Below the pieces are notes generated by a model. The model was not told where the DNA came from, searched no databases, and saw only the letters and a list, made by a program, of their open reading frames with translations. A stretch of DNA of 64,000 bases from Rhodosorus marinus CCMP1338 (Eukaryota; Plantae; Rhodophyta): assembly GCA_029953675.1 (NCBI GenBank), contig JAMWBK010000013.1:682001-746000 (forward strand). The letters run 5' to 3'. This document shows, in pieces, positions 40,756 to 43,906 of the stretch (position 1 is the stretch's first letter; the number at the start of each line of letters is the position of its first letter). The position numbers were made by a program, and so were the translations under genes.

Positions 40756-43700
40756 ATGTCAAAGTGTCCGTTCCCTGATGGGACGGTTGTTTGGGTCAAG
40801 TACCATGATTATCCATGGTGGCCATCGTTGGTGGGAGTGAAGGAGAGGATTAGCTCCAGGAAAGGGGAGTTTTGGGTGAAGTTTTTCAACGATCCAGATG
40901 GAGGGTTTGTCAAGGCAGGGCAGATGCGTCCTTTCACACCGGAGAATATTAAGAAATACATGCCGCGGAAGGGAAGCGCTGATTATGATAAGATTGTTGA
41001 GGCGGTGAGATTGGCTAGAGAGCACGATCGGGAAAATCCTGTTTCTGAGGATGATGATGATGACGATGACGATGATGTGTCTGATGACGAAGACAATAAG
41101 GAGGAGAGTGAGGAGCAGGATGAGTACAACACTGGCAAAGATCAAGAGTCGATAAATGCTGCTCGAAAGCGCGAGGCGGAGCGGGCTGCATATTCTCGAT
41201 CACGGTTGGAAGATGATCTCAAAAAGGACGAAGAGAGTTCGGATAGTTCACATCCAAGATCCGCAGCGGCATGGAAAAAGAAGCTGGTGGAGGAACCAGG
41301 GAGGAAGCAACATGATCAAGACAGCAGCAGTGACGATTACGTGGAAACTCCTCGAGATCGCCAGAGATCCGCGGCCGAGAGAAAGCCAGTGCCATCGTCT
41401 GATGAAGATGAGGAAGATGTCGACGTAGATGATATCCAGATCCCCAAGCGCCAACCACCGGGAAAGGCAAAACCCGTTGGAGACGAGGAAATGGTCGATG
41501 CGGATGATGTGCAGATCCCCAAGCGGAAACCGTTGGGGCGAACGAGGCCAACCCCTGAAAACGACCCTTCGAGCGCAACCGGGCCTGATCGCTTGCCATT
41601 TACACCGAGAGGACATGAGAAAAAGCCTGAGGATAAGAATAACGGCAGAGGTGACCTCATACCCAAGAAGCAAAAGCCGCGAACTACTCCAGGAGATGAA
41701 ACGGAAAGCGTCACACCCATGAACGCTGCGAGGGACGGGCAGCCGCCATCACGTGAAGTAGAGAAGGAGCGCAAGAGAAGCAGGGTAGATGACGAGGATG
41801 ATCAAGAGCAAAGGGCGAAGAAGCGTGCCGATCTTGCACCAGAGGCCCCCGCTTCCAAGACCGAACCGCCCGTACCCAAGGGTGAAGCCTCCAAGCAGGG
41901 CAGTGAGCGGCCCGGAGGTCGTCCAGCGAAAGCAAACGAATCAAAAAAAGAAATAGATATGAGCGCCCTTCATAGGACTGAACATAAGGAGATAGCGAAG
42001 GGCAACACTGCAAAGAGGCTACGAGAACCGGTCCACAGTAGCGGAGTAGAAGCACACTCTTCGCAAGGACAAGCAGTCGTTCTTGAGATCAATATTCCAC
42101 CTGGAAGACCCGAACCGGTATTTAGCCCTCTAGACGATTCTGAAGCGATGCAGCTGCAGATTGATGAAGAAGAGTTCACTGAGCTCTCGGAGACTCTGAC
42201 GAGTAGAGAGAGCAAGGTTGAGAGTCGCATCTCCTCGATGTCAAGTCTGAGGGAGGAAGTGGAAAAGCAAGCACGGGAGCTTCGAGCACAGGTGAAGGAG
42301 TTTACTCAGCTCGTGGACGAACTTAGCCAGGCGGACGAGAATGTTGCGAAAGCTTGGAATGATTGCAGTACTGCGCTTGAGGAACTGCACCGAGCGAAAG
42401 TCACTGTACCCATGCTGAAATCAACCAAAGTAGGGAAGCTCGTAAAGAAGATCTCGAGGGATGGAGGACCCCTCTCCGGAGCGGCAAGGTGTTTGCAGAA
42501 GGCGTGGATGGAGCTCCTCCAGCCACCCAAGAAGCTTGGGGACGGTATACCCAAACCCAAGCAGCGTGAGCATTTACCGTCTGTTCCAAAGGCGGAGAAG
42601 AGAACTAGGGATTCAGAGGCGCTTGATGCACGGGAAGACGAATCTCCGAGCTCTGAGAGGAAGAGCAAAGACGCCGAGGCGAACGCCAAGGCCCGAAAAG
42701 ACGAACCAGTACGGGAGAGCACTCCTGGCAAAGCGGATGCCGATGCCAACGGGAGCTCAAGGCCCCCAAAAGATTCAGATGCGAACTCGTCCGCTGGCAA
42801 CGTGGCGGGGGCTGACCCACCAATTCCACTGAAGAAGAAAAAAAGCATTTCGAAATCTACATCGAAGGATCGGGATCATGCAAAGCCGTCGAAGCTCTCC
42901 AGGGATGATGCCCCGAAGGCTTCGCCAGTTCGAAATGATAAAACGGTCAAGGAGGATCCACCGAGGGCATCCCCACCGCATAAGGATAAGGTTGTAGGGC
43001 AAATGACGAAGAAGCTATCGAGAACCGGCGAATTGACCAAGAAGCTTTCTAAACGAGATGCTTTTCCGAAGGGGAAATCTCAGACAAAAGCTAGCCGTCC
43101 GGGAATACAGCCCGCCAGACCACAGCAAGGTGACGCTCCGATGGCCAAGGTAAGGATAAGCATTGAGGATCGGAGGCGAACGTTTGGAACAATCTGTCAG
43201 GTACTGAACGAATGGCTGTGCTTGGCTCCGTTTGACAGGACGCATCTGCCAAGATTACTGCTGTGTTTACTGGTATTTTTGCTGGCTCGGAGAGGAGCCA
43301 AGATGAGTCCCTTGAGAGACTCTATGTGGCTCTGGATAATGAGAAGGCAGCAAAAGTCGCATCTGACCTTGAGAAAGCGATCAAAGGACTGGCGTTGCCA
43401 CAAAAGGACTATATGGAGAAGGCACGGGTGTTGCGTTTGAATCTGAAACGAAATCCGCACCTGCGAAAGGCGGTGGCGGAGGCGAAGATTTCCGTATCGA
43501 AACTGGTAACTATGGACAGCGCGGAAATGCGCACGGAGGAGCAGAGCAAGGAGATTCGAAAAATAGAGGACCGAAACCTGCACTTCTCACAAAAGAGCTT
43601 GGATGTGAGGGTACAGAGGGGCCTGTTCACCTGTTCGGAATGCAGGGGCGACAAGACAACCTACCACGAAATGCAGACCAGGTTGGTTTGCTCGATTACA

Positions 43701-43906
43701 CTCTTATGGGTGCCCATCACGTTCCGACCCCTGACCCAAACAATCGTATTTTGATGCAGGAGTGCTGATGAACCTATGACTGCTTTCATTACCTGTCTGA
43801 GATGTGGGCACAAGTAAGTAGCTGGTAGAAGATACGGACCAAATCCAATGCGGTCACGGGGCTGATGTGGTTAATATCCGTCTTCTTTGATAGGTGGAAG
43901 GAGTGA
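40756..43906 (+). CDS. PWWP-domain + coiled-coil + complete TFIIS (N-terminal, central and Zn-ribbon domains) fusion protein, 4 exons
   Basis: PWWP FPDGTVVWVKYHDYPWWPSLV..FWVKFFND..GFV; TFIIS-N ALEELHRAKVTVPMLKSTKVGKLVKKI..AARCLQKAWMELL; after intron 43151-43238 the central domain KAAKVASDLEKAI..YMEKARVLRLNLKRNPHLRKAV..LVTMDSAEM; Zn ribbon [40 protein letters not shown]. Confidence 0.88.

Follow-up and report, generated by a model that had tools for sequence, protein, structure and literature searches.

Proteins in which a PWWP domain precedes a complete TFIIS have been in the literature since 2008, and the gene analysed here, which lies on the forward strand of a 64,000-nucleotide (nt) stretch of DNA from the unicellular red alga Rhodosorus marinus (the window, by which that whole stretch is meant), is a new gene with this architecture. 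Its product of 967 amino acids (aa) is probably the R. marinus orthologue of a red-algal lineage of PWWP-bearing TFIIS proteins and, as judged from its sequence, a working RNA polymerase II (Pol II) transcript-cleavage factor.

Regarding the closest described systems, TFIIS2-1 of Trypanosoma brucei and other trypanosomatids has an N-terminal PWWP domain followed by TFIIS domains I-III, the PWWP domain is present in all TFIIS2-1 homologues, and the fusion was judged by its authors to be independent and convergent (Uzureau et al., 2008; PMC2610381). For the red alga Cyanidioschyzon merolae, the same authors noted a putative PWWP-bearing TFIIS, CMT501C (Uzureau et al., 2008; PMC2610381). The trypanosome PWWP-TFIIS proteins have already been studied by knock-out, localisation, chromatin immunoprecipitation sequencing, interactome analysis and PWWP binding assays (PMC8638923; PMC8559703); single TbTFIIS knock-outs were viable (PMC2610381), and TFIIS2-2 associates with Pol II subunits and the PAF1 complex (PAF1C) near some termination regions (PMC8559703). 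An earlier reading of the window from its letters alone (the sequence-only reading) had taken the fusion to be unprecedented, which does not hold, given that trypanosomatid TFIIS2-1 and C. merolae CMT501C were both published in 2008 (PMC2610381). It had also named, as a finding that would tell against its account, an architecture both widespread and already characterised; this applies in large part, the architecture being characterised, in trypanosomes, but not widespread.

Compared by description only, CMT501C resembles the Rhodosorus protein in being red-algal and in having an N-terminal PWWP domain followed by TFIIS, and it is presumably an orthologue. Expansion of the disordered linkers makes the Rhodosorus protein the longer one (967 aa vs. 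about 700-800 aa), and three introns interrupt its gene. T. brucei TFIIS2-1 shares the order of parts, namely PWWP domain, domain I with an LW motif, domain II and a Zn ribbon with a DE pair; both TFIIS2-1 and TFIIS2-2 of T. brucei are nuclear and coexist with the PWWP-less TFIIS1.

Canonical TFIIS (Dst1 of S. cerevisiae, human TCEA1) shares domains I-III, an identical catalytic hairpin and the Zn ligands with the window protein, at about 35-42% identity over domains II-III, but lacks the PWWP domain, a helical extension of about 40 residues and about 570 residues of disordered linker. LEDGF/p75 (PSIP1) and HRP-2 (HDGFL2), which read H3K36me2/3 on transcribed chromatin, have an N-terminal PWWP domain, a disordered linker and a TFIIS N-terminal domain as in the window protein, and the PWWP and N-terminal domains of the window model both superpose on LEDGF/HRP-2 structures; these proteins are, however, without domain II and the Zn ribbon and hence have no transcript-cleavage function. 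Membership of this HDGF-related group is ruled out for the window protein by the presence of domain II and the Zn ribbon, the likeness being limited to the N-terminal two-thirds. In Bye1, PHF3 and DIDO1 a reader domain is likewise combined with a Pol II-binding module resembling TFIIS domain II, and the TFIIS-like domain of Bye1 matches weakly, but the reader is a PHD finger rather than a PWWP domain and, because the catalytic Zn ribbon is lacking, these proteins occupy the TFIIS site without stimulating cleavage. The catalytic ribbon and domain II of the window protein likewise rule out membership of the Bye1/PHF3 family.

Gene structure and transcripts

The PWWP and TFIIS parts belong to one gene and one mRNA and are not a merged gene model, since transcripts of another R. 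marinus isolate (MMETSP0011, 83% identical to the window protein) carry all four domains in a single open reading frame (ORF), those of P0272 (964 aa) and P0267 being fully spliced. Splicing of four exons via a GT-AG model gives a coding sequence of 2904 nt and a protein of 967 aa that is 100% identical to the NCBI hypothetical protein NDN08_000190 of Rhodosorus marinus (GCA_029953675.1, contig JAMWBK010000013.1). The gene is made up as follows.

40756..43906, + strand: whole gene, span of the coding sequence; PWWP-TFIIS of 967 aa, equal to NCBI NDN08_000190
40756..43149, + strand: exon 1; aa 1-798; the intron-retained MMETSP transcript P0266 diverges exactly after ...DAPMAK
43150..43238, + strand: intron 1; GT..AG, 89 nt
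43239..43681, + strand: exon 2; aa 799-945 plus two nucleotides of the codon for R946; contains domain II and the N-terminal half of the Zn ribbon
43682..43759, + strand: intron 2; 78 nt; splits the acidic-hairpin motif
43760..43813, + strand: exon 3; D949 and E950 at 43767-43772
43814..43893, + strand: intron 3; 80 nt; retained in the MMETSP isoform P0002, which ends ...CGHK
43894..43906, + strand: exon 4; ...WKE and the TGA stop

An in-frame TAG stands directly 5' of the ATG, exon 1 is a single unbroken reading frame of 2394 nt that encodes the PWWP domain, domain I and all that lies between them, and introns 2 and 3 both fall inside the region coding for the Zn ribbon. The exon junctions are confirmed by the two intron-retention isoforms, the end of P0002 and the point of divergence of P0266 being those expected for retention of intron 3 and intron 1, respectively. 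The single transcript across 40756-43906 that had been proposed from the sequence is thus borne out by full-length transcripts, albeit from another isolate; of the intron placed at 43151-43238 the end is correct whereas the start lies at 43150, two further introns had gone unlisted, and the other coordinates stand.

The possibility that gene prediction had merged a PWWP gene with a downstream TFIIS gene would draw on the roughly 700 residues of low-complexity linker between the two parts and on some MMETSP isoforms in which the ORF is split near aa 290. What sets the split isoforms apart, however, is only a frameshift, located where the window gene has a short A-run; exon 1 is uninterrupted, P0272 and P0267 span the whole protein, and the same fusion occurs in the intronless single-ORF genes P0123 and P0118 and in the Porphyridium orthologues. 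Such an artefact is therefore exceedingly improbable, and it was rejected on the strength of the MMETSP transcripts and the intronless orthologues.

Regarding the split isoforms themselves (P0269 with P0268, P0270 and P0271 of MMETSP0011), the frameshift near aa 290, at about window position 41620, leaves a PWWP-only ORF of 292 aa and a remainder of 595-747 aa, and its site corresponds to a short A-run in the window gene (gagaaaaagcc). The frameshift probably stems from assembly or from allelic variation, although a genuine PWWP-only product is conceivable.

Domain composition of the protein

The domains and linkers of the protein, with the kinds of evidence for each, are the following.

40780..41025, + strand: PWWP domain; aa 9-90; Pfam PF00855 (47.8 bits), alignments, AlphaFold2, Foldseek
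41041..42135, + strand: linker 1, acidic/basic, disordered; aa 96-460; predicted local distance difference test score (pLDDT) below 50, composition
42136..42249, + strand: helical extension before domain I; aa ~461-498; possible coiled-coil segment
42250..42525, + strand: TFIIS N-terminal domain (domain I); aa ~499-590; Pfam Med26, alignment, AlphaFold2, Foldseek
42526..43149, + strand: linker 2, basic, rich in K, P and S, disordered; aa 591-798; composition, AlphaFold2
43317..43583, + strand: TFIIS central domain II; aa 825-913; Pfam, PDB TFIIS matches, invariant columns
43626..43903, + strand: Zn ribbon (domain III); aa 928-966; coding region split by introns 2 and 3; Pfam, PDB, alignment

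The PF00855 match at aa 9-90 lies above the gathering cut-off and includes the YPWWP motif at aa 19-23. In a PDB sequence search the N-terminus matched the PWWP domains of MSH6, PWWP2B, NSD3 and DNMT3B, and more weakly 2nas_A (E 1e-3), which we take to be a PWWP domain of the trypanosome TFIIS2 type. An AlphaFold2 model of the full protein, built with a six-sequence alignment, has a five-stranded beta-barrel with helices in this region (pLDDT 70-87), and Foldseek comparison gave target-normalised TM-scores of 0.66-0.75 against the PWWP domains of MSH6, HRP-2 and PSIP1, with PWWP2B, NSD3 and DNMT3B among the other PWWP matches of the full model. The cage residues Y19, W22 and F43 and the acidic residue D46 are all present and align, in DNMT3B, with the H3K36me3 cage residues F236, W239 and W263 and with D266, respectively. 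At the three cage positions, each of the six PWWP-TFIIS proteins compared has an aromatic residue, while the acidic position is variable.

All three TFIIS parts are present. Domain I is matched by PF08711 (Med26/TFIIS-N) at aa 540-587 (24.1 bits vs. a cut-off of 20.6), and a PDB sequence search aligns aa 515-632 with domain I of TCEA1. When aa 455-600 were aligned with the N-termini of 26 canonical TFIIS proteins, the initiator methionine of the latter fell at about aa 499 and W584, of the LW type, was invariant, and domain I is therefore placed at about aa 499-590. This segment is modelled at a pLDDT of 89, and its best Foldseek matches are the N-terminal domains of LEDGF, TFIIS and IWS1, with probabilities of 0.84-0.97 and weak E-values (0.2-2); the part superposed comprises the short helices and the end of a long helix.

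Domain II is matched by PF07500 (TFIIS_M) at aa 825-913 (61.3 bits vs. a cut-off of 29.2), conserves the Pol II-binding motif NLKRNPHLR (NLKRNPxLR) and is modelled at a pLDDT of about 80, the strands of the ribbon being modelled as well. The Zn ribbon is matched by PF01096 (Zn_ribbon_TFIIS) at aa 928-966 (59 bits, above the gathering cut-off), and the window protein shares C930, C933, C958 and C961 as well as the RSADE acidic hairpin (D949, E950) with all the red-algal orthologues. Residues 818-966 match human TCEA1 and the yeast and Komagataella TFIIS proteins (PDB sequence search, E down to 3e-20), and the top Foldseek matches of the full model in the PDB are Pol II-bound TFIIS chains (5iy6_U, 7unc_O and 3po3_S).

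Between linker 1 and the short helices of domain I, the model has one continuous helix (~aa 461-546), which is followed by three short helices. In alignments, the C-terminal part of this long helix coincides with helices 1-2 of canonical TFIIS domain I, so that the lineage-specific part would be only about aa 461-498, a stretch that is helical in all red-algal orthologues. The exact geometry of the domain I bundle is uncertain because AlphaFold2 models helices 1-2 as one continuous helix. Counting heptads over aa 455-560 placed hydrophobic residues at no more than 6 of 8 a/d positions, which is suggestive but not decisive, and dimerisation via the long helix is speculative.

The sequence-only reading had described an N-terminal PWWP domain (YPWWP), an acidic disordered linker, a heptad-like coiled coil and all three TFIIS parts with an intact DE hairpin. 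The PWWP domain is upheld by the Pfam score, the PDB alignments, AlphaFold2 and Foldseek, the linker by its composition and its pLDDT, and the TFIIS parts by the Pfam matches, the four cysteines and D949/E950. Regarding the coiled coil, a long helix is indeed predicted, but it is not wholly a separate module because it overlaps helices 1-2 of domain I.

Linker 1 contains two copies, in direct orientation, of a 54-nt unit (41403-41456 and 41478-41531; 75 nt apart and 78% identical), so that (V)D(V/A)DD(I/V)QIPKR(Q/K)P is encoded twice. A third, looser copy of the motif (GDLIPKKQKP) follows about 50 residues downstream. The MMETSP homologue preserves the motif, which might serve as a nuclear localisation signal or in short linear motif interactions.

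Distribution of PWWP-TFIIS proteins

When 1.84 billion cluster representatives were searched exhaustively with phmmer, 3758 matched, and among the best 150 of these, five clusters have a PWWP domain ahead of TFIIS.

Rhodosorus cluster: PWWP-TFIIS relative, within the best 150 phmmer matches
Porphyridium purpureum KAA8492982.1: PWWP-TFIIS relative, 856 aa
P. aerugineum MMETSP0313: PWWP-TFIIS relative, 786 aa
Metagenome gene P0123: PWWP-TFIIS relative, 793 aa, intronless, on a long contig, locus with 56% G+C content (GC)
Metagenome gene P0118: PWWP-TFIIS relative, 703 aa, intronless, on a long contig

P0123 and P0118 may be Cyanidiales genes. The relatives can be aligned in their PWWP domains, in the helical stretch that precedes domain I, in domain I itself and in domains II-III, and Q-T-R-x-A-D-E-P-M-T, the four cysteines and NLxRN..LR are invariant across these orthologues. 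The occurrence of the same architecture in Rhodosorus, in Porphyridium, in the possible Cyanidiales genes and in the published C. merolae protein suggests that PWWP-TFIIS is the ancestral red-algal form and not a one-off. The window gene adds a third red-algal class, the Stylonematophyceae, to those of the published Cyanidioschyzon protein and of the Porphyridium proteins found here.

Word-indexed searches with the full-length protein, swamped by its low-complexity linkers, found nothing but that protein and the MMETSP transcript, while those with the C-terminal 169 aa or with a linker-free profile of five species returned mostly canonical TFIIS and no named red-algal proteins. The profile search yielded one extra PWWP-TFIIS, P0318 (L004, JGI 3300050377, from a metatranscriptome contig of 1633 nt with 36% GC), a compact protist protein of 528 aa. 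Since P0318 has all four domains, the fusion exists outside red algae and trypanosomatids.

The PWWP-bearing protein might instead be a specialised paralogue that stands beside a separate canonical TFIIS and acts at particular chromatin regions, such as termination zones, rather than in general backtrack rescue. This would match T. brucei, in which the PWWP-bearing proteins coexist with PWWP-less TFIIS1 (PMC2610381) and TFIIS2-2 is enriched, together with PAF1C, at a subset of Pol II termination regions (PMC8559703). Among the best 150 matches, however, the PWWP domain is found in all five representatives that are red-algal or presumed to be so, and when the clusters of 20 other near-best, canonical matches were looked up, these were fungal, from the stramenopile Heterosigma, from Volvox or Neomeris of the green lineage, or nameless, and none was red-algal. 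Furthermore, TFIIS gene expansions were listed only in trypanosomes, Paramecium, Drosophila and vertebrates (PMC2610381), which would imply a single TFIIS in C. merolae. On balance, a specialised paralogue is considered unlikely.

Among the other architectures met in the representative search, P0229 (886 aa) has two AAA ATPase modules and all of TFIIS (N-terminal domain, TFIIS_M, Zn ribbon), whether as a genuine fusion or through the merging of gene models.

Predicted function

By analogy with established Pol II-TFIIS structures, domain II of a PWWP-bearing cleavage factor would dock on the jaw and funnel of Pol II, and the Zn ribbon would enter the pore and bring D949 and E950 to the active site, where they would stimulate cleavage of backtracked RNA, while domain I would bind short motifs in other initiation and elongation factors. 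Less certain, though likely, is that the PWWP domain adds nucleosome affinity through methyl-lysine and/or DNA; on the logic of LEDGF and HRP-2, such affinity would concentrate TFIIS locally on chromatin.

Regarding the ligand of the PWWP domain, the cage appears to be under selection, since its aromatics are kept in red-algal lineages that diverged deeply and in a protist unrelated to them, and red algae including R. marinus carry genes for SET-domain methyltransferases. That the domain reads H3K36me2/3 can only be inferred, and the trypanosome precedents point elsewhere. It is conceivable, though we doubt it, that the domain is not a methyl-lysine reader at all and is either a DNA-, nucleosome- or protein-binding module or largely vestigial, with recruitment to Pol II as in any TFIIS; PWWP domains in general bind DNA as well (PMC8638923), and TbTFIIS2-1 offers a precedent, as set out below, whereas the presence of all three cage aromatics and the acidic residue in the window protein, and of the aromatics in every PWWP-TFIIS compared, speaks for a cage under selection.

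Several observations weigh against a chromatin-reading TFIIS orthologue as proposed here. Deletion of the PWWP domain left the subnuclear localisation of TbTFIIS2-1 unchanged (PMC2610381), the PWWP domain of that protein bound neither DNA nor methylated histones, and that of TbTFIIS2-2 binds H4K17me3 and H3K32me3 and not H3K36me (PMC8638923); by analogy, the red-algal PWWP domain may be dispensable for gross localisation. In the literature search, red-algal PWWP-TFIIS appeared only in the one remark on CMT501C, with no biochemical data on red-algal members. Regarding the domain assignments, the match of the N-terminal domain exceeds its cut-off by just 3.5 bits and the TFIIS_M match is without the first ~24 profile positions. 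Finally, a neighbour-joining tree of domains II-III (159 columns, 139 sequences) was unresolved and did not recover a red-algal clade, and orthology therefore rests on shared architecture and taxonomy.

The reading of the protein as a working transcript-cleavage factor of a red-algal PWWP-TFIIS lineage can be extended, more tentatively. PWWP-TFIIS could be the sole TFIIS of red algae, derived from an ancient fusion in the red-algal ancestor independent of that in trypanosomatids, and all backtrack rescue would then pass through a factor with its own intact reader of methyl-lysine and a lineage-specific, possibly dimerising long helix; we regard this combination as possible but rather doubtful. 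If PWWP-TFIIS were the sole TFIIS, a link between transcript cleavage and a chromatin reader would be the default state in red algae, and if the extended reading as a whole were true, red algae would offer a natural system for asking whether chromatin marks direct TFIIS action; C. merolae is genetically tractable. Such a default link would be of some relevance to the evolution of elongation factors and to how TFIIS finds arrested polymerases; the gene itself overturns nothing.

Genomic surroundings

On the contig, the gene sits between a gene for an AMP-binding enzyme and a gene of the TB2/DP1/HVA22 family. These neighbours and further genes of the window are as follows.

15451-16308, - strand: DEK_C and SWIB/MDM2 protein; ordinary nuclear gene
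19386-20111, + strand: RCC1-repeat protein; ordinary nuclear gene
28594-29517, + strand: Sas10/Utp3/C1D-family protein; ordinary nuclear gene
35947-36513, + strand: Med9-like ORF, about 4 kb upstream of the TFIIS gene; PF07544 below threshold (23.9 bits vs. a cut-off of 26.9)
37049-38945, - strand: AMP-binding enzyme (acetyl-CoA-synthetase-like); two adjacent ORFs that are its N- and C-terminal halves
~44466-45077, - strand: TB2/DP1/HVA22-family protein, 124 aa, downstream neighbour; genes called on the public contig
51090-51692, + strand: CobW/HypB/UreG-type GTPase; ordinary nuclear gene

The two ORFs of the AMP-binding enzyme are one intron-split gene, with a product of 678 aa in the NCBI record. 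Upstream of the PWWP-TFIIS gene, about 100 nt before the start codon and in the presumed promoter or 5' untranslated region, window positions 40600-40665 hold long T and G homopolymer runs (ggtttttttttttttggtggtggtcgggggggggggggcggtgg).

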